The notes: generated by a model from the sequence alone, not told the origin. DNA of 63,594 nt, filler included, from Octopus bimaculoides (GCF_001194135.2; 5 parts of 4 records of this genome joined end to end with filler, not necessarily neighbours in it), one strand, 5' to 3'; counted from the whole stretch's first letter, positions 5,946 to 35,558 are shown. Numbers and translations: made by a program.

Positions 5946-6098
5946 TGATGATGATGATGATGATGGCCTATTTAAATGCTAAAGGGTTTAAGTATGTTTT
6001 AATGTTGCTACGAAGAAAGTTTCAGAAGTACAGCTAAAAGGGAATTAGAGAAAATACAAGTTGATCATTAAAATCATAACTGACCATTTGAAATCCTC

Positions 6099-6132
<34 letters not shown>

Positions 6133-7068
6133 AGAAAGAGAGGGGGATGGGAAGGTTGTATGGAAGGCGGAGAGAGAGAGCACATATTGGCATTTTCTTA
6201 ACAAAAAGCTATCAGGGAATATTATTTCATAACACAACACACTTCATCTTGCCGTTCAAGCTACTCCCATCCACCCTTATATAATGTAGGGTGGACATGT
6301 ATTTCTTTCATAGCAAGACACCTGTGCTTGCCCCCTTCATCATAATTTAGCCTCCCAATATGGGGTGTAAAGCTACTCTGCCTCTCACTCTCAAACACAC
6401 TCTTACATGGCGAAGAGGATATTTTCTTGTCTTGTGAGGTACTTGGCAACCTCACTAGGGCAGGTGCCAGGAAAAAAAGGCACCCAGGGGCACACTGTAA
6501 AGTGGTTGGTGTTAGCAAGGGAATCCGGCTATAGAAACCACGTCATAGCTGACATTGAAGTTTGATGTGGTCCTCAGGCTCATTGGATCATGGGAAACCA
6601 TCCACCAAATACCAGCATGGAAAATGGATGTTAAATTCTTTTACTTGTTTCAGTCATTTGACTGCAGCCATGCTGGAGCACCACCTTTAGGTGAACAAAT
6701 TGACCCTAGTACTTATTCTATTGGCCTCTTTTTGCTGAACTCCTATGTGATGGTGACATAAACACACCAACATCGGTTGTCAAGCGATGGTAGTGGTGGG
6801 ACAAACACAGACACAAACAGTAAATACATACATATATATATATATANNNNNNNNNNCTATAGTAGAAGACACTTGCCCAAGGTGCCACACAGTGGGACTG
6901 AACCTGGAACCATGTTGGGAAGCAAGTTTGATAATGATGATGAATTTCTGGAGACGTTAAAAAACGTGTATCCCTGTCCTTGGTGCTGCACTATTACCCA
7001 CCAGTCGTAAGTTCAAATCCTGTAACAACCATCAAAATAATAATAATAACAACAATAGGATTACTTAC

Positions 7069-7136
7069 TTGAGGAAATGGTGCTTCCCAGTAACGGCGAC
7101 AATCTAAGAATGAGCAAACTTCATTGGAAAACACAT
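7069..7136 (-). CDS. Exon 6 (DVFSNEVCSFLDCRRYWEAPFPQ); downstream exon(s) not located
   Basis: Acceptor ttttttatttattcccag, donor CAA|GTAAGT, 68 nt, phase 1/0, completes GAT across the junction. Cys spacing (C-x4-C) continues the family pattern. Confidence 0.87.
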
Positions 7137-7850
7137 CTGGGAATAAATAAAAAACATAAATGAATCCTCATCAGTCATGGCTCTCCATCACCTCAATCAC
7201 CATTGCTTTTTACATCAGTTTTGTTCTGCCTGATTCACTGAGTCTCCGTGATACAAGATCTGTCAATGTTTCTTCATTGAGAGCCCAATGTTCTCCAGTC
7301 AGACGTAACTATTTCTCACCCCATATCTTCCTACTAAAACTTGTGACCTTGCCTTGTTCATTAACTCCTGGAGGAGTTGTATGGTCACCATTATGTGAAG
7401 CCCTGTAGCTTAGTGGTTAGGGTATTTGGTTTACTGTTGTAAGGTCAGGAGTTCGATTCCCAGCAACGCTTTATTTCACATTTCTCCAGTTCACTCAACC
7501 GGCAAAACTGAGTTGTACCTGTAATTCAAAAGGGCCAGCCTTGTCACATTCTGTGTCATGCTGAATCTCCCTGAGAACTATGTTAAGGGTACATATGTCT
7601 GTGGAGTACTCGGCCATTTGTATATTAATTTGTGAAGACATGTAACTTAGCGGTTAGAGTATTCGGCTCGCATTTGTAAGGCCACGAGAAATGCAGTGAA
7701 GCATGTTGTCCAGCGTGCTAATGATTTTGCCAGCTTGACCACCCCCTCAATAACATTAACTAATGCTAATTCTCTAATAAAGTTGATAACATGAATGAAC
7801 AAAGCCATTTTAACTTTAAAAAAAAAAGCAAAAAAGAAAGACAAATTTAC

Positions 7851-7911
7851 CTTGAATATGTCTTGATGAATTTGTAGATGCTGTGGAGGGGATGCATTCT
7901 TTGATTATTTC
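7851..7911 (-). CDS. Exon 5 (EIIKECIPSTASTNSSRHIQ+G)
   Basis: Acceptor ttatttccacttccag, donor AAG|GTAAAT, 61 nt, phase 0/1. Open in frame with both neighbouring exons. Confidence 0.85.
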
Positions 7912-8397
7912 CTGGAAGTGGAAATAAAATAATTGTAAAACGTCAAACAGAAAGATCTTGTGCCTTTTTTTTCTTGGAATTTTAAAAATAATAATCATAA
8001 AATGGAGAAAAACAAAAAGAAAAAAACAAAAACAAGACAAAAACAGAAAAGTAGATAATGAAGAAATCAAATTTGGCGTTGTGTGAAATGGTAGAAAATT
8101 GGTTCACAGATTTGAAAGAATTGATTAAACTTGTGTCGCAGAAGTGGATTTTAATGCCCTGACAAATGGAGGTTTCCTAACTCTTTTGATACTAAACCAC
8201 ATGAGGCTGTTCTTGGTCCCATGACTCAAAGACCCTGTTTAAAAGTGATCTAAAACAATGTCAATTTGTGTTCCAAACATGAGGTCAATAATATCAATTT
8301 ATTTTACTTAATTATTATTTTAAAAATTAATTCAAGTAAAAGGAAAGTATTTCAACAGAAATATGGTAACAAAAGTGTTAAAGTGATGATGATGATG

Positions 8398-8665
8398 ATC
8401 ATCATCATCATTTAACGTCCGTTTTCCATGCTGGCATGGGTTGGATGGTTTGACTGGAGACTGGCAAGCCAGGGGGCCTCACCGAACTCCAATCTGATCT
8501 GGCAATGTTTCTACAGCTGGATGCCCTTCCTAACGCCAACCACTCCGAGAGTGTAGTGGGTGCTTTTTATGTGCCACCAGCACAGGAGCCAGTCAGGCAG
8601 CACTGGCATCGGCCACGTTCGGATGGTGCTTTTTACGTGTTACTGGCACAGGAGCCAGTTGGGGC
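8398..8665 (-). mobile_element. RTE-tail-derived short retroposon ending in (ATG)n
   Basis: catcatcatttaacgtccgttttccatgctggcatgggttgg...ctacagctggatgcccttcctaacgccaacc; homologous to 33735-34045 (opposite orientation) and 12280-12530. Confidence 0.7.
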
Positions 8666-9055
8666 AAAACCTTTCATCAAAATTTCATGTTATGTTCCAA
8701 ACACCAGCTTAAAAATGAACTGAGGTATTTTCTGTAGTTCTTGATTATTTTCAAAAATTAATTGAAACAAAGTTATTTATCAAAATTCTTCATGATTTTT
8801 GAAAATTAACAGAAATACTTTTTATCTTTTACCTGTTTCAGTGTGCAACCATGCTGGTGCACCACCTTGAAGAAATCCCAGTCGAACGAATTGATCCCTG
8901 GACTTATTTTTTAAAACCTTACTTATTCTATCATACCTTCCATAAACATAGAATGGATGGTCATGGCTGGGAAGACTGATCCTAAATCTGCTGAAGGAGG
9001 GCCGACCTGATGTTTGTTAAATACCAGCCAAATTGCAACACAAGCAGTTACTTAC

Positions 9056-9193
9056 CATGCATTTCTGTTGAAGCTCAAACATATCATCTTCAAGACACAA
9101 CGCCATGTCCCAATAGTTTGGTTCCAGAGCACCAGAAAGTATTTCACAACGGAAGATATCACAATAGTCTGCCAGACACATCGAGTCATTCCC
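9056..9193 (-). CDS. Exon 4 (GNDSMCLADYCDIFRCEILSGALEPNYWDMALCLEDDMFELQQKCM)
   Basis: Acceptor tttctttttcag, donor ATG|GTAAGT, 138 nt, phase 0/0. The CLADYCDIFRC motif follows the zinc-finger exon as in the plant-type family (CLADxCxxLxC). Confidence 0.92.
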
Positions 9194-10067
9194 CTGAAAA
9201 AGAAATCCTGGCTTTTATCAGAGATGTCACTTTAATACAATGACGTAGTCTTTTGATCTGCTTCGGGTGGCACTTTTAATGGGGCACCACTTTTGGGTCT
9301 GCTGTAGGCAATATGTGCTTTTTATGGGGTCTAGTGGGCAGCAAACGGAAGGGCTGCCCTGAATGGCACACACTCTAGCTACGCTAGTGCTACTCCTCAA
9401 CACCATTCAATGTCCACTTTTCTGTGCTTGCATGGGTTGGACGGAGTTTATTTTGGGGGTAGATTTAACCCTACCTGTGTCCAAAGCAAGATAATGCTGA
9501 TTTCAAACTTTAGCATGAGGCCAACAATTTTGGAGGGGTGGGGGAATCGATTACATCAACCCCCCAATATTTAACTGGTATGAATTTTATCAACACCGAA
9601 AGGATGACAGGCAAAGTGGATCTTGGCAGAATTTGACCATGGAACACGAAACAGATGAAATGTCACTAAACATTTTGTTCAGAATGTTAATGATTCTGCC
9701 AGCTTGCAGCTTTTCCAAATAAGGTAGTATTGTCCCATGGCCAGACATGTTCTCGTTGAACAACACCGATTGTATGACAGTGATCATCATTTACAACTGT
9801 CACATGACATCAAAATAAGGACACACACACGATGGGCATCTTTCAGTTTCGCTCTACCAAATCCACTCAAAAGGATTTGGTTAGCCCAAGGCTATAATAG
9901 AAGACACTTGTCCAAGGTGACACTCAGTGGGACTGAACCCAAAACCATGTGCTTTGAAAGCAAGTTTCTTACTCACAGAAGCTATGCCTCTGCTGTCATA
10001 CACGAAGAATTATTTTTTTTATCAGTTCTAAAATGGAAAAATGGTAAAGTAACAAAAAATAACTTGC

Positions 10068-10277
10068 CGTTCGGACATATTGTGGGTGTCTGTTATCAAA
10101 GTGTTTGTCGAGATAGTTTTCTCCATAGAATTCTTTGCCACAGAAGGAGCAATGCCATTTGGTTAAAGTCTTCATGAATTTCTGCCGTTCTTGTATAATG
10201 TAGACATCTCGCTCTTCTGTGAATGGGCAGGAATATGGCATCTCAACTTTGGTGTCTTTGAAAGATTTGAAGATTCT
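10068..10277 (-). CDS. Exon 3 (RIFKSF...WHCSFCGKEFYGENYLDKHFDNRHPQYVRT), C2H2-like zinc-finger motif
   Basis: Long polypyrimidine acceptor (t13-gtcctttcctccag), 210 nt / 70 codons, CxxC-x12-H-x4-H motif ending HFDNRH. Donor is non-canonical ACG|GCAAGT. Confidence 0.93.
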
Positions 10278-10767
10278 CTGGAGGAAAGGACAAAAAAAAA
10301 AAAAAAATGAAAGCAGAAGACACAATATGAAAAAATGCAGCAATCATCACTATTCTCCTTTCACTAATAATAATAATAATCCTTTCTACTAGATGAAAGG
10401 CAAAATCAAAATAAGGTAAAGTAATAATAATAATGATTCTTTCTTATATAGACACAAAGCCTGACCCCACTACTTGATAGGCACTTATGGTCTTATGCAA
10501 AGTTTTCATTGACCTCATTAAGATATTTCCTCTTGCTGTGTATGATGGCTTCTTTGAAATTCTCTGAGGACTGGTTTTACAATGCAGTGCCTCATCGCAA
10601 TTGTACAGAGTTGTACTCCAACCACCTGAGCTGCAGACACTGCAGAAATTAATCACAACTGTAGACAATGATGTAGCGGTGGACATCCCTAACCATACCG
10701 ATATATGTTTCTGTTCATAATTCACTACAAACTGAAGAAAATATTAAAAAAAATTTTTTAAACTTAC

Positions 10768-10851
10768 CTTGCGAAGTATTTCGCGAACTATCCGGGCTCG
10801 ATCACGTAAACATGCTGTATTAACTGAATAGATGTTCACTAGAAAGATGAC
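10768..10851 (-). CDS. Exon 2 (VIFLVNIYSVNTACLRDRARIVREILRK) of uncharacterised C2H2-like Cys-rich protein
   Basis: Acceptor ttttactatcaccag, donor AAG|GTAAGT, 84 nt, phase 0/0. CLRDRARIV resembles the CSRERSR motif I recall from plant At5g63280-like proteins. Confidence 0.88.
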
Positions 10852-12279
10852 CTGGTGATAGTAAAACAAATACAGAAATGAGCGGTGTGATTATTTCGAA
10901 CGGAGAGAGAAAATTGTGAGCAAGGATCAAACTGGATGGTGGAATTTTGTTTTAAGTAAGCCATATAACCCTCTCGTAACTTTTCTACTTTTTGAAATTT
11001 TCATAAAACTTTTGCAAANNNNNNNNNNNNNNNNNNNNNNNNNNNNNNNNNNNNNNNNNNNNNNNNNNNNNNNNNNNNNNNNNTCATACAATTATGCAAA
11101 CCCTGTCCCCACAAAAAAAAATCTTTTTTTGGTGCATGATGTAAGGGCTAATTAGCTGTTATTTTTAGCACACCTCATGACCACCTTGTACTCTTTTTGT
11201 TAGTCAGTCAGACTTGTTGACGTTTTTCAATATCTTTCTCTCCCCATAAACACATTTAATGGTCTGTTGCTGAGACTGAAGACAAATCTTTGGACAGTCC
11301 GTGATTTAAAAAAGGAAAATTTTAAAAATTAACCACAAAATTAAAAAAAAAAAAAAAAAAAAGTGGGGGGTAACGTGTTCCTTTCTGAGTGACACTGACT
11401 CACAAGGGTTGGTTTGCTGGTTTCCATGGCATATATGATTCCCCAGCCAGACAGGGGCGCCAATCCATTGCAGGAGGACTCATTTTTGCCAGCTGAGTGG
11501 AATGCAGCAATGTGAAATAAAGTGTCTTGCTCAAGGACACAACACACAGAACTCACGACCTCTAAGTCATTCAAATGAAAGATTTGATACACACACCTTC
11601 CTAACCAGGCGGTTTGGGGTTCAAATCCACTGCATGGCACCTTGGACAAGTTCTACTAGACCCTAGGTGAATCAAAGCTTAGTGAATGGATTTGGTAGGC
11701 GGAGAGTCAAGTAAAATCAAAAATTAAAATCACAATCGTAAATGGAAATTGTAGTTGTGGCCGATGCCAGTGCCGCCTGACTGGCTCTCATGCTGGTGGC
11801 ACGCAATAAGCACCATTCATGCGTGGGTTGTTGCCAGTGCTGCCTGACTGGCTCCCTGTGCCGGTGGCATGTAAAAAGCACCATCCGAACGTGGTCGATG
11901 CCAGCTCCCCCGCCCGATGATGAAGAAATTGAAAGCATTTTACTGTATGTATACATACATACATATATATATATATATATTTGAATTTAATTAGAGGTTG
12001 TGTTAACCTCATGAAGGGATGGTTCCATCCAAGGAAATACTGGTTCAATACTTAGTATTTTGGGGGAATAAATTTCCTTAAAATAATAGGTATCCATAAA
12101 AGAACATTTGGTTTATATTCCTTTAAAAGAAGAGAAAATGGAGATTGGGAAGTTATTAATTATTAACAGCAAATTGGTCATCTTCACTGACAGTCGTTAA
12201 TAATAAACAATTATTAACTTCCCAATCTCCATTTTCTCCTATTTTATATATATGTATGTATAAGCATATATCAATCTCC

Positions 12280-12775
12280 TCATCATTCAGCATCCGTTGT
12301 CCATGCTGGCATGAATTAGATGGTTTGACTGGAGATGGTAAGCCAGAGAGCTGCATCAGGCTCCAGTCTGAATTTGGCTTGGTTTCTACAGCTGGATGCC
12401 CTTTCTAATGACAACCATGCCAACCACTCCATAGAGTGTAGGGGGTGGACACCTTTAAGTGACACCAGCATGGGTGCTTTTTATGTGTCATCTGCATGGA
12501 TGTATCACCGGCACTGGCCACAACTATAATTTCATTTGGCTTGACGAGTTTTCTCAAGCACAGCAAATAACCAAAGGTCACAATCGCTTGTCATCACCTC
12601 TGTGAGACCCCACATTTGAAGATCATGCTTCACCACCTCATCCCATGTCTTCCTGGATCTACCTCTTCCACAAGTTCCCTCTACAGTTAGAGATTGGCAC
12701 TTCTTTACACAGCTATCCCCATCCATGTGTGCACGCATGTGCATTTTGGCCTCCATGTGTCGACTGTGCGATCGT
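12280..12775 (-). mobile_element. RTE-clade LINE 3' end with associated 3'UTR / SINE-like tail
   Basis: SCVKKCQSLTVEGTCGRGRSRKTWDEVVKHDLQMWGLTEVMTSDCDLWLFAVLEKTRQAK-stop, the RGRPRKTW motif of RTE RT C-termini. The tail is shared with copies at about 8398-8665, 11750-11915, 16060-16230 and 33735-34045. Confidence 0.85.
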
Positions 12776-13652
12776 AAATGAGTGTCACTGTCATAGAAGC
12801 AGTGCCATCAATTTCTTATCTCTGTGAAAATATGTCTGATCGAGGAGAAATATTACTTTGTTTCGAAACAGGTAAGGATTCGCAACAAAGAGAACCTGGT
12901 CGTAGAAAATCTGCCTCATGGAAGCACACAAAGGTGGACATTAAAACAAACGATTACGACAATGATGCTAGAAACATAGCTTCCTCTTCTGAACCTACTG
13001 GCCAACACCCAAGAAATACTTCCAACTAAACTACACCCCCACCACCATTCATGCCAATGCATATTACAGAGCTGAAAAATCATACCTGACTCACATTTCC
13101 CCAGCGTTACAATTCCTATGCATGAATGAAATGAAATGAACCATCCACAAGCCAAGAATGGTGTTTGCACTCATATTATAACACCAGAGAACCAATCCAA
13201 GGTGAATCAATACAAAAATATTGATTACACATTATATATTTACAGGACATATTGGATAGAGTCCAAAATGATAAACAGTTCAAGATGAAAATAGATTCAG
13301 AACAGCAATTGTAGCCAACTTGAGCAGAATATCAACCACGTTGTTTATTTACTGTTTTATTGCTTAATAGTTTGTGCTTTGGAGAGGAGTGCAGACATGG
13401 CTGTGTGGTTAAGAAGTTTGCTTCCTAGTTACATAGTCTCAGGTTCAGTCCCACTGCGTGGTACCTTGTGTAAGTGTCTTCTCTTGTAGCCCCCAAGCTA
13501 ATCAAAGCCTTGTATGTGGATTTGCTAAAGGGAAACTGAAAGAAGCCTATCATATAATCATTAGCACTGTTTTGAAGTTCGCTTCCCATGTTCATCATAT
13601 ACACACACACATATATACATACGTACATATATACATTCGTACCTATATTCGA

Positions 13653-13733
13653 GGCTCTGATGAAGCTATAAGGTGTTACTCAGACACTCAACAAAGAACC
13701 CACTACATCTTACAGCAGAAACAACTGTAAGCT
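13653..13733 (+). ncRNA. Type I hammerhead-ribozyme-like motif (Penelope-like element type)
   Basis: GGCT-CTGATGA-A-GCTATAAG-(36 nt)-CTTACAGC-A-GAAAC-AACT-GTA-AGCT: intact CUGAUGA/GAAA core, 7/8-bp stem II, minimal near-palindromic stem III, GUA cleavage triplet, 4-bp stem I. Confidence 0.6.
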
Positions 13734-13851
13734 AATGAAGCTCATAAGATAATTATTTATCCCTTTATCATCTATCTTCTTTATTATCAGGGCTCTGTAC
13801 TTAGCCAACATTTCATTCTGAAACATATGTATGAGTTTTATATTGGGTTAT

Positions 13852-13914
<63 letters not shown>

Positions 13915-14823
13915 GGTCTGTAAACTTCCATATAAAATCAACAGAGAGAGTACTTTTGTTTTCAATTTCTCTTTTCCTTTTTGAATATTATTTTATTTAA
14001 CTTTAAAGTAAATATTTTTCTTTTTTACTATTCTTTTCATTATTTCGTATAAAAAATACCAATAAATTTGATCAAAGTCATTTCATAATTATTGTATGTA
14101 TACCATATTTCTTGACATTACCCATGGTGGCATAAGTATATTTCCAAATACCTGTCATATGATCGCTCATACATATTATATATATACATATTATATATAT
14201 ATATATATAATATATTATAGATATATATACATATATATATTATATTTATATACATATATATATATTATATATATATGTGTGTATATATATCTGAAAGTGG
14301 CTTCTTTCTATCTCCAGGCAAGTATGAAGCCCAAGATTTTCAGAGAGGGTGGAATGGTGATAAGCAATGCTTTTCAAAAGAGTTCTAGCAAAATGGAGAC
14401 CAAAACTAGGTCAAAGACTCAAATGAACTAGAATTATTCTGATCTCTGCTACTCACAATTACACAAATATATTTTATTCTTAGAACATATCCAAATCATT
14501 TATAAATATAACAGGCTTTCGTTCTTTTGGCCGATAAATTTTATGCAAGGCAGCTGGGTCATTACACTTGGTTAAACATCCACAACAATGGAAACCTTCC
14601 AAAAAATAATTATTACTCGACAGAATGGGAAGTAAACTATATTGATTGTTTTTATTGAGAAATAAAAGAAATTAGGATTTTGAGAAGAGAAAATTTTTTT
14701 TAGGTCAAACAAGGTGTGACTATTTAGAGCAGTAATGTAAAATGAATACTGACATAGATTTATAATAAATTCATATATCATTGTTAACAAGTGACATTGG
14801 AATTGTTATAGATCTTTAATATA

Positions 14824-15210
14824 GGCGCAGGAGTGGCTGTGTGGTAAGTAGCTTGCTTACCAACCACATGGTTCCGGGTTCATTCCCACTGCATGGCACC
14901 TTGGGCAAGTGTCTTTTGCTATAGCCTCGGGCCAACCAAAGCCTTGTGAGTGGATTTGGTAGACGGAAACCGAAAGAAGCCCGTTGTATATAAGTACAAA
15001 TATGTATGTGTGTGTATATGTTTGTCCCCCCAACATCGCTTGACAACTGATGGTGGTGTGTTTATGTCCCTGTTACTTAGCAGTTCGGCAAAAGAGACCG
15101 ATAGAATAAGTACTAGGCTTACAAAGAATAAGTCCTGGGGTCGATTTGCTCGACTAAAGGCGGTGCTCCAGCATGGCCGCAGTCAAATGACTGAAACAAG
15201 TAAAAGAGTA
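14824..15210 (+). mobile_element. Full-length tRNA-derived SINE (family A) with an internal (TA/TG) microsatellite
   Basis: Head with A-box-like TGGCTGTGTGG and B-box-like GGTTCATTCCC; core ccttgggcaagtgtct...ggatttggtagacggaaac; microsatellite; tail ...ggtgctccagcatggccgcagtcaaatgactgaaacaagtaaaaga. Other full or partial copies at about 5332-5721, 6640-6925, 9835-9975, 11600-11710, 13390-13555, 19800-19930, 35095-35290, 40670-40760, 53875-54050, 54362-54498, 59560-60942 and 63200-63350. Confidence 0.85.
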
Positions 15211-16824
15211 TGCATAGTGGGCAACTGCAGTTTTCGTAGGTTATTTAATTGATTAACCCTTTCGCATTCAGCTTACTCTGTCAAACGTAAAGCTTATTCA
15301 TTCCCATTGATTTAAATCAATCATGCATCAGCTTGTAGCTTTGAGATTTCGATGATGTGATTATTTATTAATGGGTTCTAATTTAGGCAGAAGACCAGAA
15401 ATTTGGAGAGAGCGGGGTGGGCGATTGGTCGAGACCAATGACCCGAGCTTTCAGACTGTTACTTTATTTAATCAATAGGGGAAAGGATGAACGGCAAAGT
15501 TGACTTTGGTGGAACAGGAACTCACATTATTATGAGTCTGAAAGAAATACTGTAAAGGGTTTTGCCTGATGTAGTAGGCACACTCACAAACGCACATACA
15601 TGTGTGTATATATATATATAAATAACGTTGACCACTAACGTGGACAATTAATGTGCTAGAAATGGATCACATCTTGTGTCTATTAAGACCTAAATTGTTC
15701 TCAACATGAAATATAGCAGCATACCAAAACGTAGGCGGGCAAGACATTTAAAATCACCTAAAAAAACATTATTAAACATGTACCGGTTTCGGATTTAACA
15801 AATCTTACCGATTAATCCCCTGAGATTGCAGATACTATTTCTGAATCTCTTTGATTCTTTAGATGTGCTGGCCTCCTGATAATTAATCGATATTAATTAA
15901 TATATGATTAATTACCAGATTTTATAATAATATATATATATATATACACACACACACAGTAATCCCCCGACTATTGCAGGTGAAAATCCATAAAGTAGAA
16001 ACAGTACTGTATTATATATACATTTTTTAATTATTTTTATAATTTGTATATATATCCGAACATGGCCGATGTCAGGTCCACTTGACTGGCTCCTGTGCCG
16101 ACGTCATGTAAAGAGCACCACCCGAACGTGGCCGATGCCAGTGGCATGTAAAAAGCAACATCCGAGCGTGGCTGATGCCAGTGCCCCCGACTGGCTCCTG
16201 TACAAATGGCACATAAAAAAACACCCACTACACTTTCTAAAAAATTTTTTAAGAGAGAAATTCTCAATTCTTTTAATTTTAAGAATAACAATTTGCCCCG
16301 CTACTTTTTACAACATCAACTCCCCTCCCCCGTCAGCCATGAAGCATACAACAAGATCTAACTGAAGTTTATATATATATATATATATATATATAAAAGC
16401 TAAACTAGTTGAATGTTTACGTAAACAACGACCTCCGATACAACATGGAAAGAGCCATATAGAAACTACATGATGGAATACCAGGAATTTCTACAAAAAA
16501 TTCTAAAGTATTGTGTTTTATTGGTCAATAAAAATATACTATAAAACAGGTAATAAAATTAATTTAATTAGACTTAGTAATCACGGGGTCATGAAGTATT
16601 ATGTACACAGCACGTGTGAAAATCATGAAATATCTACAATTCGAAAATATGGTGTTTTATTAATAAAATCGGTAAATTTGTAAAAAATTACCATAAAGGT
16701 AAGGTAAGGTAAAACAGGTAAATAAGTCAGTTTAGTTTAATTAGGCCTTACTAATCATAAACTGCCTAGATGTGGATCTAGATATTAACCCTCCCTCATT
16801 GGTTCATAAAGTATTTTTGGCGGA

Positions 16825-16897
16825 GGTAAAGAATACGCACATCACCCATTTTCGGCGCAACCCTAACCCTAAACACCGGGTGTGCGTATTCTTTACC
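16825..16897. repeat. Perfect 17-bp inverted repeat enclosing (CCCTAA)2; mini-MITE or Helentron-like remnant
   Basis: GGTAAAGAATACGCACA (16825-16841) and TGTGCGTATTCTTTACC (16881-16897); 39-nt spacer containing AACCCTAACCCTAA. Confidence 0.7.
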
Positions 16898-17229
16898 CTA
16901 GGCCGTATGTTTTACATTACACACGCGGAATCCCCGAATGTCTACAAAAATTATATCGTCTTGTGTCTATAAAATATACTATTGATGTTTCTTTCTTTCT
17001 TCTCCTCCCACCTCTTTGCTCTTGTTTATGTTTTTTCTTTGGTTTGGGATTTGTATCTTAATGCGATTTTGTATTAGGTTATACATCATGTATATGCGCG
17101 TTATATATGTAATTATTAAATTATCTAAACTATATCAAATTATTATTTTCAACAAAGACTATACATATGTTTAAATATACTATAGAACAGTAATTAACTC
17201 AATTTAATTAATCTTAAGGTCAAAACTAA

Positions 17230-17440
17230 AGGGTTGTGGAATTCATAGCCTACAAATAGCAAAGACGTAGTATGAGAAAACTCAAGAAGGAGTCACCGAA
17301 AATGAGAATCCTCTGGGATGCAATGATCCAGTGTGATCATCTGACCAGAAATCAGAACTGGATGTTGTTGTGGTGAATAAAAAAAAAATGAAAGAACATG
17401 TATGATAATCGACATACCATGCCCAGGTGACAACAGGATC
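17230..17440 (+). mobile_element. R4/Dong-type LINE RLE fragment
   Basis: KMRILWDAMIQCDH...ELDVVVVNKK...MIIDIPCPGDNRI, i.e. the W-D...PD...IID..P.D RLE motif, frameshifted. Confidence 0.75.
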
Positions 17441-18111
17441 AATCTTAATAATTACTTATGGAAAATAATAATTTGAGTGAATGGTAGTATGCCGTTTTTC
17501 TGTTTCCGTACATGTTTGACAGCTTTGATTATATCCATAATTAACGTGAGCAAAGCGAAGCTATTGACTTCGTAAGTGTATCGAATGTTAACAGATGAGA
17601 GAACGATGAAGAATAAATATAACATACGAGGCACAATTACTGTCCTGCAAAATTACGATCTTCTTCGTCGTATTCGCCTTTTCGTCCACACCAACATATC
17701 AACAATTTGCGATGGAGATCACATCTTATTTCAAAAAGTAAAAATAGTTTCACTTTGACCTGGAAAGCCCCCAGCTTCCAACAAGGCAAATACTTTCGTT
17801 TTTGGTTTTTCTTTTTGGATCCTAGGGACAAAGATGTGTCAACTGAAACATTGCATACACTATAAAAAGACCTGCAGGTAATTTCTTGCCTCGTTAATTA
17901 TATTGTTATATTTGTAGCCGTAAGATTTAAGGGGATAAAGATAAAAGGGAGTTGCAACGTCCTGCAAATGTTCTTGAGAAAGTCATCAATATCACAACTT
18001 CTCTCCACTTCTGTGTGTGAAATCGTTTTCTTTCTGTAGAGCCATTGGATAGAAGCAGACATAGATGAAAAATGAAATTATAGAAGGAAACATGAAATAA
18101 AGTGTACTTAC

Positions 18112-18138
18112 TTGCCACAACAAGAAACAGATGTTCAT
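18112..18138 (-). CDS. Exon 1 (MNICFLLWQ) of uncharacterised secretory-pathway C2H2-like Cys-rich protein
   Basis: ATG at 18138-18136, perfect donor CAA|GTAAGT at 18111. Phase 0 joins exon 2 to give a continuous hydrophobic signal-peptide-like N-terminus (MNICFLLWQVIFLVNIYSVNTA). Lies just downstream of a CpG-containing promoter-like patch. The exon is short, so assignment rests on splice, phase and signal-peptide logic. Confidence 0.72.
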
Positions 18139-19763: not shown

Positions 19764-19796
<33 letters not shown>

Positions 19797-20335
19797 TACG
19801 ACGGGCTTCTTTCAGTTTCCATCTACCAAATCCACTCACGAGACTTTGGTCGACCTGAGGCTATAGTAGAAGACACTTGCCCAAGGTGCCACACAGTGGG
19901 ACTGAACCTGGAACCATGTGGTTGGTAAGCCATGCCTTCGCCTATATTTTCTTCATTTAATTTTCATTGGATCTTTCTGATTTGGCGGACGCCATTTGTT
20001 TTCTAAGTGATATATTGGAACAATTCCAGCATTAATAAAAAAAAAACAAGACAAAAAACTCCGCATGGACGTAACGAATCAATCAGATTTAGATAACCAT
20101 TATATGCAGTTAAAGGGAAATAAGTCTGATGTTGAATGGAAGTGCTAGAATTATTTCCCTTTAAATATTATTAAAAAAAAACAACAGAATCCTCATCACG
20201 AACATTTTATTATTTACTACTGCATATTTACATTCGAATTGAATAAAGATATTTAATGTTTATATTTAATCTGAATAAAGATCAGTGACGTAGCGTAGAT
20301 TTTGACTGTCTCATTCTTTAAACGCAACATACCTT

Positions 20336-22545
20336 TAACTTGCCAGACGTCCCTTATATACGACACATGTCCCATATTTGAGAATTTTGTCCCTTGTCCT
20401 GCACTGACCTTTCAGGGACACCCCAAACGTCCCGTATTTAATTCATTTTCAAATATCGTAATAAAAATATATTTTTACTTCCCTTTTCACGGTTCTTAGT
20501 TGTAACTTTATAAGCAATTATTCTTTCTTTTTTCATATTCTCTTCATGAAAATAACCTAAATGTCACTAGGAAACTAGTGTTGCTAGAAGTTTACACAAA
20601 ACTGACGTGTTTGCAACTTAATACTGTCAACAAAGTGTGTTGTTACTACTTGCCACGCCCCACTAATCCACCCATTCCAAGATGCCAAAACGTAAGTGTA
20701 AATTTTGTGATGAATATTCCAGCGAATGGACATTTATCAAACAAGGCAGAAGCTGTTTTGAAGCAAACTGTGTTGTATGTAATTGCACAATGGCAGGAAG
20801 TCTGAGATCAAGCAACACATAGAAACAGCAAAGCACAAAAGTAGTATTGCCTCTACTTCAAAAGAAGCGGGTAAACTAACAAACTTCTTGATCAAGAAAA
20901 ACAGATGAAGAAAGTAAAATAATAGCTGCAGAAGTTGCAATGGCATTTCATACTGTCCATCACCATCAATCATTCAGTTCAAATGACTGTATGGACGTAC
21001 TACTACCAACAGTATTTCCTGATTCTAAAACTGCATGCAAATTTTCAAGTGTTAGGATTAAATGTGCTGTAATAATAAAAAAAAACTGTTTTGGCTCCAT
21101 ATACTATGACAGAGATTGTTAAAAATATAATTAACTCTTCTTTTTATGGCATATCTACTGATGCAAGTAATCACAACGTTGAGAAAATTTTTCCCATTGA
21201 TTGTGCAATGTTTTTCACGTGAAAAAGGTTTGCTGATAAAGTTATTGCGAGTAAGATTCCTCCCAAATCAGACCTCGGAAACAATAGCAAACTTCTGCAG
21301 AGAGAGCTTCATCAAGTTAGGACTAGACGTGAAGAAATGTATAGCTTTTGGTGGAGATAACACAAATACTAATTTTGGTGGTTGTTTGTGCATAAGCACA
21401 AATAATGTCTATTCAAAATTCAAGGAAAGCATGAATGAATCAATAGAAGGTGTTGGATGTCCAGCCCATATTCCATACAATGCTGCTCATACTGTGGCCA
21501 ATGTTCTTTCTGCTGATGCTGAAGTAATTGTTGCTAAATTGTTTTCATACTTTGGTATTTATACTGTTCGATCTGAGAAGTTGAAAGATTTCTGCGAGTT
21601 TGTTAGTGTGCAGTATGCCTCAATTCTCTCACATTCTAAAACTCATTGGCTTTCTTTGATGAGAGCAGTTGAGAGAATTCTAAGGTTATTTAAAGTACTG
21701 AAATCATTTTTTTGATTCTGAAGAAAAGCCCCCACCCCTCCTAATTCTTGTCGAATTCTTCAATAATCCACTGAGTAAAACTTACTTATATTTTGTTCAC
21801 AGTTTTGAATATGTTTTTAGCAACAGGATTACGAAGATAGAATTGAGAGAAAACATCATTATTGAAGTGCTTGGCTGTTTCAAAGAACTCATTGCAGTTA
21901 CAAAGGAAAGAATTAATGGAAAGTTTATTCCTCTCAGTGAGAAGGATTTCCTTAATAAAGACGATGTCAAATCTGAAGAGAAAACAAAATTTCTGCTTGA
22001 AGTCGATAACTACTATTTCATTTGCCTTGAGAATCTGGAGAAATGGGTTTCATTTTTTGAAAATTTTGATAACTTTATATGGATGTTATTAGATACAGTT
22101 CCAGCATGGGAGAATGTAGAATCATCTTGTTTAGAGTGAAAGAACAAAGGTTTAAAAATTGATGGCAACATTCTTCTCTGTCAGTGGTCAACATTTAAAA
22201 AAACTCCTTTCTAAAGAGATGCAGATCAAACCTGATGAATGGAAGACCAAACTATGTCATGAAAGATGGTTTTCTATCCTTCAGTAGATTGTTTCAAGAA
22301 CAATACTCCAAGTTGTTAATTTTGTGCCAGTTCTTATTTACCATACCAGTGCATAATGCTAATGTTAAGCATGTCTTCTCAATGGTGAATGTTCCATGGA
22401 CTAAAGAATGAAATAAGTCGGATGTGACTACTGTAGAAGCTATCTTACAATGCACACGGAACCTTAACTGTCAATGTAAAGAATTTCATAGGCATGTGTT
22501 AGACAACAAGGATCTGTTAATAAAAGCCAAATCGTTAAACTAATA
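20336..22545 (+). mobile_element. Decayed hAT DNA transposon (Blackjack-like) with frameshifted transposase pseudogene (ATG 20682 to about 22543)
   Basis: N-terminal MPKRKCKF and BED-finger-like CVVC...KQHIETAKH; ISTDASNH (first catalytic D, frameshifted), GGDNTNTNFGG, GVGCPAH (CxxH), KTHWLSL, and dimerisation-type HNANVKHVFSM. Multiple stops and frameshifts. The 5' end has TTGCCAGACGTCCC subterminal motifs typical of Blackjack-type ends. Confidence 0.9.
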
Positions 22546-33667: not shown

Positions 33668-34188
33668 CTGAAAGTCAAATAAACACATAAATAAATTTAT
33701 ATGCAAAGAAAATAAATGAATAAGGAAATCTATGGCAGGCATGTAAAAAGCACCAACCGAATGTGGCCAATACCAGTACCCAACAGATTGGTTCTCGTAT
33801 CAGTGGCACGTAAAAAGCACCATCCAAACGTGGCTGATTCCAGGTCTGCCTGACTGGCTCCTGTGCCGGTGCCATGTAAAAAGCACCCACAACATTCTGG
33901 TTGGCATTAGGAAGGGCATCCAGCTGTAGAAACCTTGCCAGATCAGATTGGAGCCTGGAGCAGCCACTGGCTCTCCAGACCTCAGTTGTCAAGCCGTCTA
34001 ACCCATGTCAGCATGGAAAATGGATGTTAATTGATGATGATGATGATAAAAACAAGAGAATATACAAAGCTGATATGGAGCAGGTAATGTAGATAAGCAT
34101 AATTAGGCTTCACACGCACACACAGACACACACACGCACACACACTCATGGGTGCCCAAGCAGATGTAGATATTTATGTAAAACTTAC

Positions 34189-35091: not shown

Positions 35092-35558
35092 TTGTGTGTC
35101 TGTGTTTGTCCCCCCAACATCGCTTGACGACTGATGGTGGTGTGTTTACGTCCCCGTAACTTAACGGTTCGGCAAAAAATGTAGATAGAATAAATACTAG
35201 GCTTACAAAGAATAAGTCCTGGGGTTGATTTGCTCAACTAAAGATGGTGCTCCAGCATGGCCACAGTTAAATGACTGGAACAAGTAAAAGAATATAAACC
35301 TATCTATGCATCTATCTATCTTTCTCTCTCTTTATATATATATATATCTACACATCTATATTTTATTAGTCATTAAATGATAAATCGAAATAAGAGAATA
35401 TGTTTTTTTGTTCATTTAATCCATTTCAGTAGAGGTTGCTGCAAGCAATCAATTATTGAATATTTTTTGGGGGTCTTAGATTTTCTATGGGTAACCATTA
35501 GTTTGTTAAAAGATGGCAGCAAATGCCAGGGGCTGAGAGGAGAACATTCTAGGATTGA

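Follow-up and report, generated by a model that had tools for sequence, protein, structure and literature searches.

It is almost a reflex to regard C2H2 zinc fingers as proteins' tools for binding nucleic acids in the nucleus, and automatic annotation lists the proteins considered here as transcription factors in plants and as 'C2H2-type domain-containing protein' in animals. ARS2/SERRATE, whose finger most resembles theirs, is a nuclear, soluble RNA-metabolism factor, and the ARS2 finger binds short peptide motifs. Arabidopsis AT5G63280 (271 amino acids, aa) has a finger at residues 105-128 and a transmembrane (TM) helix at residues 223-246, and is one of the 64 membrane-bound transcription-factor candidates in Table 1 of a 2022 review (PMC9237531). 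Here we describe a relative of AT5G63280 from Octopus bimaculoides, encoded on the minus strand at 18138-7069 of a stretch of 63,594 nucleotides (nt), filler included, which we call the window (GCF_001194135.2; 5 parts of 4 records of this genome joined end to end with filler, not necessarily neighbours in it). We conclude that the octopus protein is, on balance, probably a type I membrane glycoprotein of secretory compartments, with a structural zinc finger that may bind protein.

The octopus protein has the same signal-peptide-like start and the same order of 12 cysteines (Cys) and 2 histidines (His) as Arabidopsis AT5G63280/AT5G40710 and Drosophila CG4133. They also have in common the CLAD.C....CD motif and a sequon directly following the finger, and, to judge for octopus by the O. 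vulgaris orthologue, a single TM helix with a short tail, a plan from which the arthropod CG4133-type members depart with an acidic insert and a long tail. The tail ends differ, with KKXX or KXKXX in plants and protists versus ...LQHPLV in the O. vulgaris orthologue. ARS2 has no signal peptide, TM helix or Cys-rich helical domain. Literature searches on CG4133 and At5g63280/At5g40710 returned no functional study, and one on luminal/lumenal zinc fingers returned nothing relevant.

The octopus product and its orthologues

Six phase-compatible exons splice to a product of 196 aa (Table 1) that reads MNICFLLWQVIFLVNIYSVNTA/CLRDRARIV...CPF...WHCSFCGKEFYGENYLDKHFDNRHPQYVRTGNDSMCLADYCDIFRCE...VCSFLDCRRYWEAPFPQ, with 12 Cys beyond residue 22 and two N-glycan sequons, N109-D-S and N167-S-S. 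Exon borders are AG acceptors and GT donors, except for one GC donor at the end of exon 3. An earlier note on this DNA had proposed six such exons encoding at least 196 aa, with 12 Cys after the predicted cleavage site and two sequons (NDS, NSS). All six exons were recovered in place, exon 3 being refined to the GC donor, and our counts of Cys and sequons agree. The note had also considered that an alternative first exon might lack the signal peptide; as described below, the transcript of a close relative, the cuttlefish, instead retains the hydrophobic exon 1.

The spliced product matches the annotated O. vulgaris protein (P0001, 271 aa) with E = 2e-125 and, using the GC-donor version, 96% identity. 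Identity is 84% to Argonauta and 77% to the cuttlefish Acanthosepion. All six exons and their splice sites are kept in two Octopus genomes, those of O. vulgaris and O. sinensis, in which the gene comprises eight exons over about 30 kb, with the TM helix in exon 7 and the tail in exon 8. Exon 1 and its donor are 98.7% conserved in both. A chance origin of the exon chain is excluded by the O. vulgaris match together with the conservation of its Cys and His in 62 metazoan sequences.

Transcript evidence comes from cuttlefish, where the orthologue runs uninterrupted on ~2.1-kb contigs from 87 sequencing runs. One of these contigs aligns to the genome in eight exon blocks, and since the genomic gene spans 16 kb in those eight blocks, the contigs are transcripts. 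The cuttlefish transcript has an in-frame stop just 5' of the ATG, as does octopus exon 1, where a TGA immediately precedes the ATG in frame. The exon 1 with the hydrophobic start belongs to the mature mRNA in a cephalopod, the cuttlefish.

The 196-aa reading depends on the GC donor of exon 3 (ACG/gcaagt at 10068). Both O. vulgaris and O. sinensis keep this gcaagt donor (GC-AG intron 3, 10062-10068). In the spliced cuttlefish transcript the junction falls at the codon where octopus exon 3 ends, and the cuttlefish genome has a GT there (AAG/gtaaat). We rejected a GT donor at 10077, 9 nt upstream, as the end of exon 3: its use would lose V-R-T, which is present in all homologues.

The TM helix and tail, encoded by exons 7 and 8 in O. 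vulgaris, are absent from the window because exon 7 sits 3.8 kb beyond exon 6 in O. vulgaris and the octopus piece stops 1.1 kb after exon 6, at 5946. No TM coding sequence was found in three frames of 5946-6993. The window thus holds exons 1-6 of an eight-exon, single-copy octopus gene.

Extent and conserved anatomy of the family

A family profile built from nine lophotrochozoan sequences was searched against 1.84 billion representatives. It matched 1364 proteins below 1e-3, some of the weak matches being ordinary multi-finger proteins, 748 below 1e-10 and 117 below 1e-30. Members occur in lophotrochozoans (many molluscs, an annelid, nemerteans and a brachiopod), cnidarians (Actinia, Hydra and Hydractinia), deuterostomes (the sea urchin Strongylocentrotus) and arthropods (the lobster Homarus, mites and very many insects, including Drosophila melanogaster CG4133). 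Outside animals they occur in Arabidopsis, Cardamine, Chara, the glaucophyte Cyanoptyche and marine picoeukaryotes from Tara samples. Vertebrates, fungi and nematodes do not appear among the more than 250 named matches, and no exhaustive search was made for these groups. CG4133 is single-copy in flies, and Arabidopsis has two copies.

The octopus product contains the full-length, collinear domain of ~170 residues with the 12-Cys and 2-His pattern that marks the family. An Arabidopsis chromosome-5 protein (P0274, 272 aa) shares 27% identity with it in an alignment of 164 aa (pairwise E = 6e-24) that brings all 12 Cys and both His into register, and the Arabidopsis cluster matches the family profile at 3e-31. 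In Pfam scans, no model reached its threshold on the octopus product, on P0001, or on members from an ant (P0036) and a sea anemone (P0025). Judged by the distribution of its sequences, the family is old and may predate the plant-animal split, and no characterised member was found.

Across the 62 metazoan sequences C80, C83, H96, H101, C113, C118 and C123 are invariant, and at least 89% of the sequences have C23, C54, C140, C152, C159, C181 and C186, the exceptions being mostly alignment gaps. The most conserved motif of the family is C113-LADY-C118-DIFR-C123-D. A sequon follows the finger, ahead of the CLAD motif, at N109 in molluscs and as N135-A-S, the only sequon, in Arabidopsis P0274; another lies near residue 166-167, in two adjacent alignment columns, in 30 of the 62 metazoan sequences. 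In six marine protists (P0250, P0280, P0289, P0164, P0224 and P0246) both finger Cys are replaced, giving S..S or S..A, and both His and the ten other Cys are kept, so that nature provides a form of the domain that lacks the zinc site. This joint loss of C80 and C83 is the only real case of Cys co-loss. From these sequences, the two finger Cys behave as a unit, and the zinc site is dispensable in some lineages. An apparent loss of C140-C186 in arthropods was an hmmalign artefact caused by a long insert, and MAFFT shows the residues to be conserved.

That insert, an acidic, low-complexity segment of roughly 150-250 residues, lies between C123 and C140 in arthropod members such as P0036, P0029 and CG4133 (P0419). 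Their cytosolic tail is long (median 147 aa) and ends in a conserved motif of the type Y.YV..P..LK.RL, faintly echoed by [IL]R.R in mollusc and cnidarian tails. Animal tails have a conserved tyrosine (Tyr)-rich juxtamembrane stretch (YYC.AY.YFYTD.F.D) and the distal [IL]R.R.

Signal peptide, transmembrane helix and membrane orientation

By a hydropathy test, the N-terminal hydrophobic segment of the octopus product, contained in MNICFLLWQVIFLVNIYSVNTA, is signal-peptide-like. Its hydrophobic core comprises 15 residues (I3-Y17), the best 10-aa Kyte-Doolittle window in the orthologue scores 2.65, and cleavage would likely occur after S18 or A22. Of 350 complete family members, 316 start with such a hydrophobic stretch. 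Just 73 of 345 members have one of TM length, and in 79% it is too short to span a membrane; in insect members, for instance, a helix-breaking PWP motif comes next. A single long hydrophobic helix follows the domain, as seen both in hydropathy and in the model of the full-length O. vulgaris orthologue, which has a confident TM helix at residues 198-233 and a disordered tail.

Orientation is indicated mainly by the plant and protist relatives, 41 of which have a dilysine C-terminus (KKXX or KXKXX), for example ..KKKPF in Arabidopsis, ..KSKRF in Cyanoptyche and ..KDKHF. Such C-termini are COPI-binding retrieval signals that function only on the cytosolic C-terminus of a type I protein. Lysine plus arginine (K+R) counts around the TM helix in this dilysine group are 2.69 before and 3.98 after it, which supports a type I topology.

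Published data for AT5G63280 point the same way. A signal peptide is predicted by SignalP 6.0 as well as by DeepSig, and Aramemnon gives a secretory score of 26.9 (PMC9237531). Mass spectrometry identified a new N-terminus at F27, N-glycosylation of N133 and reversible oxidation of C162 (PMC9237531). N133 lies between the finger and the TM helix, five residues past the finger (PMC9237531), so the finger of AT5G63280 is lumenal. The 'type II' label in Table 1 of the same paper stands against its own Supplementary Tables S2 and S3, where the signal peptide, F27 and N133 imply the opposite orientation. A signal peptide, a processed N-terminus at F27, a glycan at N133 and dilysine ends are what the plant homologue presents, and not the make-up of a membrane-bound transcription factor. 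It is for the plant homologue only that lumenal exposure has been demonstrated.

The earlier note had proposed that the protein is lumenal and not a transcription factor, and the support for this comes mainly through relatives, namely the AT5G63280 data and the 41 dilysine ends. Its other proposals about the family also held. The kinship to plant At5g63280/At5g40710 is borne out by the P0274 alignment, and the TM helix at the end of the protein is seen in the O. vulgaris orthologue and in relatives. What it took for an old family common to plants and invertebrates extends to a charophyte, a glaucophyte, protists, cnidarians, lophotrochozoans, arthropods and a sea urchin, and searches of Pfam, the PDB and the literature found no characterised member.

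The zinc finger and the predicted fold

The octopus finger, C80-SF-C83-GKE-F87-YGENY-L93-DK-H96-FDNR-H101, has the classical C-x2-4-C-x12-H-x3-5-H spacing with an aromatic and Leu core. It falls below the Pfam zinc-finger thresholds (zf-met 16.2 versus a cut-off of 21.2; zf-BED, zf-C2HC_2 and zf-Di19 also below theirs). AlphaFold2, run on the 196 window-encoded residues with the 62-sequence alignment, predicts a compact helical domain around a ββα finger at residues 70-101 (Table 1). The mean predicted local distance difference test score (pLDDT) is 91.3 and the predicted template-modelling score (pTM) is 0.82.

Foldseek found no match for the whole domain in the PDB (best E 0.23) or BFVD (best E 0.13), none being below 0.1. 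Finger-sized matches were obtained to the ARS2 finger (6f7j_B, 64 columns, probability 0.90) and to zinc-finger chains of the U2 snRNP (~2 Å over 35 residues). Sequence searches of the PDB likewise returned only weak, finger-sized matches: the ARS2 finger (6f7s, E = 0.0012) and the CTCF and KCMF1 fingers. The Pfam ARS2 model (PF04959) scores 19.9-21.6 bits versus a cut-off of 30, and only over profile positions 55-97 of 195.

The ARS2/SERRATE finger (PF04959; PDB 6F7J, 6F7S, 7QY5) is thus the best match to the octopus finger and its flanks in both sequence and fold. The two have in common W.C...GK.F.G.E(F/Y)(L/V).KH...(K/R)H and the H-x4-H spacing. The likeness is limited to about 40-65 residues and lies below the Pfam threshold, and the octopus protein is not an ARS2 member. 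With classical DNA-binding C2H2 fingers (CTCF, Gfi-1, SALL4) the octopus finger shares ligand spacing, hydrophobic core positions and the predicted ββα fold. Unlike them, it is a lone finger that forms part of a larger domain, follows a predicted signal peptide and neighbours a putative glycosylation site. Helix positions -1, +2, +3 and +6, the DNA-contact positions, are G, N, Y and K in octopus, among conserved acidic residues. Because of these residues and the ARS2 analogy, we take the finger to be a candidate protein-recognition surface, an assignment that is tentative and rather doubtful.

Gene features, assembly gap and surroundings

Feature coordinates are collected in Table 1. The frame is still open at the end of exon 6.

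Table 1. Features of the octopus gene and its surroundings (positions in the window) and predicted structural elements of its product (residue numbers).
Feature	Window position	Strand	Residues	Content or basis
Exon 1, coding part	18112-18138	-		MNICFLLWQ, first half of signal-peptide-like segment; donor gtaagt
Exon 2	10768-10851	-		Remaining hydrophobic segment VIFLVNIYSVNTA, C23 (first invariant Cys), start of basic helix CLRDRARIVREILRK
Signal peptide (predicted), second half	10813-10851	-	Codons 10-22	Hydropathy
Exon 3	10068-10277	-	38-107	C54-P-F, RD.Y..QE..K motif, zinc finger, V-R-T; GC donor
C2H2 finger C80-x2-C83-x3-F87-x5-L93-x2-H96-x4-H101	10086-10151	-		Spacing, conservation, model
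Exon 4	9056-9193	-	108-153	Sequon N109-D-S, C113-LADY-C118-DIFR-C123-D, C140, C152
N-glycan sequon N109-D-S	9182-9190	-		Sequence
Exon 5	7851-7911	-	154-173 + one base	C159, sequon N167-S-S
N-glycan sequon N167-S-S	7864-7872	-		Sequence
Exon 6	7069-7136	-	174-196	C181, C186, YWEAPFPQ; donor gtaagt
Assembly gap	11019-11083			Within intron 1, 168 nt upstream of exon 2 acceptor
N-terminal helix			3-17	AlphaFold2, lower confidence
Long helix			25-45	AlphaFold2
Short helix			64-68	AlphaFold2
β-hairpin			70-74 + 77-80	AlphaFold2, pLDDT at least 95
Finger helix			90-100	AlphaFold2, pLDDT at least 95
Further helices			114-121, 123-127, 134-138, 142-159, 166-179	AlphaFold2
Repeat family 1	9807-9972, 13404-13491, 14844-15019, 19766-19930			Dispersed repeat
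Repeat family 2	8548-8657, 11749-11814, 16054-16119, 33789-33898			Dispersed repeat
Repeat family 3	6631-6719, 15125-15207, 35209-35297			Dispersed repeat
Open reading frame, upstream	21146-21715	+		189 aa
Open reading frame, upstream	21843-22139	+		98 aa

Intron 1 contains an assembly gap. In O. vulgaris (L001) and O. sinensis (L002) its flanks (300 nt above and 167 nt below) are collinear in the orthologous intron and lie 22 nt apart, and the orthologous proteins are collinear across the exon 1/exon 2 junction. An exon hidden in the gap is ruled out by this flank spacing and protein collinearity. Because the flanks are collinear and the orthologues run from exon 1 straight into exon 2, the gap stands for a few intronic bases and no coding loss.

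Upstream of the gene there are four more assembly gaps, seen as runs of N, at about 19.54-19.79, 23.1-23.3, 27.3-27.56 and 32.15-32.42 kb, and several of these adjoin (TA)n or (CA)n microsatellites. The introns and upstream region are also filled with short dispersed repeats of 60-210 nt, 64-90% alike and in both orientations, which belong to at least three families and look like short interspersed nuclear elements. Two adjacent open reading frames on the plus strand lie 3 kb upstream of exon 1. A transposase remnant was considered for them and found no Pfam support (best E 0.048, noise); they may represent a decayed mobile-element gene or chance.

Discussion

In the explanation that we propose, a cleavable signal peptide (about residues 1-22) would send the N-terminal ~175 residues across the membrane of the endoplasmic reticulum (ER). 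These would fold into a compact, mostly helical domain around the C2H2 finger C80/C83/H96/H101. The finger would hold one structural zinc, five disulfides would most probably link the ten other invariant Cys, and the lumenal domain would carry one or two N-glycans. The single TM helix, encoded by exon 7, would anchor the domain, leaving a tail of about 40 residues facing the cytosol. Given the KKXX or KXKXX ends of the plant and protist relatives, the ancestral workplace would have been the lumen of the ER or early Golgi; animal tails would later have swapped the dilysine signal for the Tyr-rich juxtamembrane and distal [IL]R.R motifs. By analogy with ARS2/SERRATE, the finger would serve lumenal protein-protein recognition of a client, cargo or partner, and not DNA binding. 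The lumenal orientation of the family is the part of this scheme in which we have good confidence, and for the octopus member, placed by comparison with its relatives, we are slightly less confident.

So, might this be a membrane-tethered C2H2 transcription factor, with its finger in the cytosol until proteolysis releases it to the nucleus? We consider this very improbable. The signal peptide, the F27 N-terminus and the N133 glycan of AT5G63280 are hard to reconcile with it, since a glycan between finger and TM helix is possible only in the lumen; the dilysine ends of 41 members need a cytosolic C-terminus; and in 79% of members the N-terminal segment is too short to serve as a membrane span. 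There is one finger only, with G, N, Y and K on its helix amid conserved acidic residues, and ten further invariant Cys, which is not a multiple of four, as zinc sites need. Neither DNA binding nor nuclear localisation was found in the literature on the family. On the other side, the cytosol is the normal workplace of C2H2 fingers, and the helix after C23 is strongly basic. AT5G63280 is listed among the 64 candidates with a TMHMM call of 'type II' (cytosolic N-terminus) and a SeqNLS score of 0.906, and one lysine of its finger, K122, is reported to be acetylated (PMC9237531). In arthropods the positive charges are on the finger side of the TM helix (K+R 2.24 before, 0.77 after), contrary to what the positive-inside rule would give for a lumenal finger. 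The type II call, the acetylation and the arthropod charges weigh against the lumenal type I protein that we favour, and so do several other points: K+R in the short animal members is neutral (1.79 before the TM helix, 1.52 after), so that the positive-inside rule gives a mixed picture across the family, a dilysine signal is absent from the octopus tail as read from O. vulgaris (...TRTLQHPLV), and the lumenal call for octopus draws on homologues at 27% identity. The weakest step is the proposed binding function, which draws on the ARS2 analogy and on the residues of the finger helix.

Two further explanations keep the domain in the lumen or outside the cell. With the same topology, the animal protein could be a receptor or adhesion-type molecule of the cell surface or of endosomes. 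Its tails would suit this, having a Tyr-rich stretch and [IL]R.R instead of KKXX, as would the long cytosolic tail of arthropods and the mainly neuronal expression of Drosophila CG4133 reported in a preprint. We nevertheless judge a surface role unlikely: the small ectodomain has no known adhesion or receptor module in Pfam scans, and strict plant-to-animal conservation suggests a housekeeping lumenal role and not a lineage-specific surface one. The Cys might instead be catalytic or metal-handling, making the protein a thiol-disulfide oxidoreductase of the lumen, or else a sensor or chaperone for zinc in the secretory pathway. Secretory enzymes need zinc supplied within the secretory pathway, and the domain is located where that supply is needed. 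Such a role would agree with the invariance of the CxxC in the 62 metazoan sequences and with the reversible oxidation of C162 of AT5G63280 in vivo (PMC9237531). Against it, the CxxC of thioredoxin-like or Erv-like enzymes starts a helix, and the one here occupies the β-hairpin knuckle of a canonical finger with exact ligand spacing; no oxidoreductase is among the Foldseek structural matches. The six protists that lose both Cys and keep the domain fit a dispensable structural site better than a catalytic one, and we regard such a redox or zinc-handling role as quite improbable. The same six members also bear on the structural, zinc-holding finger that we prefer, and count against it, and the CxxC may form a disulfide instead of binding zinc.

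The octopus gene itself is an ordinary orthologue, annotated already; the interest lies in the family, which is widespread, strongly conserved and unstudied, with no Pfam model or structural relative found. Its 'transcription factor' label in plants is probably wrong. It is conceivable, with a little less than even confidence on our part, that we are dealing with a eukaryote-wide family that places a zinc-loaded C2H2 finger in the ER/Golgi lumen, within a helical domain rich in disulfides and lacking any solved structural relative, as a recognition module, whether as a receptor for cargo, for quality control or for a metal-dependent partner. If the proposed explanation is true, this would be the first lumenal C2H2 finger, the new fold would join a small set of lumenal metal-binding domains, and the whole family would leave the plant transcription-factor catalogues. 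Regulatory-network inferences that use AT5G63280 as a transcription factor would then need correction, and the family would offer a tractable 'conserved unknown' with which to find out why the early secretory pathway requires it.

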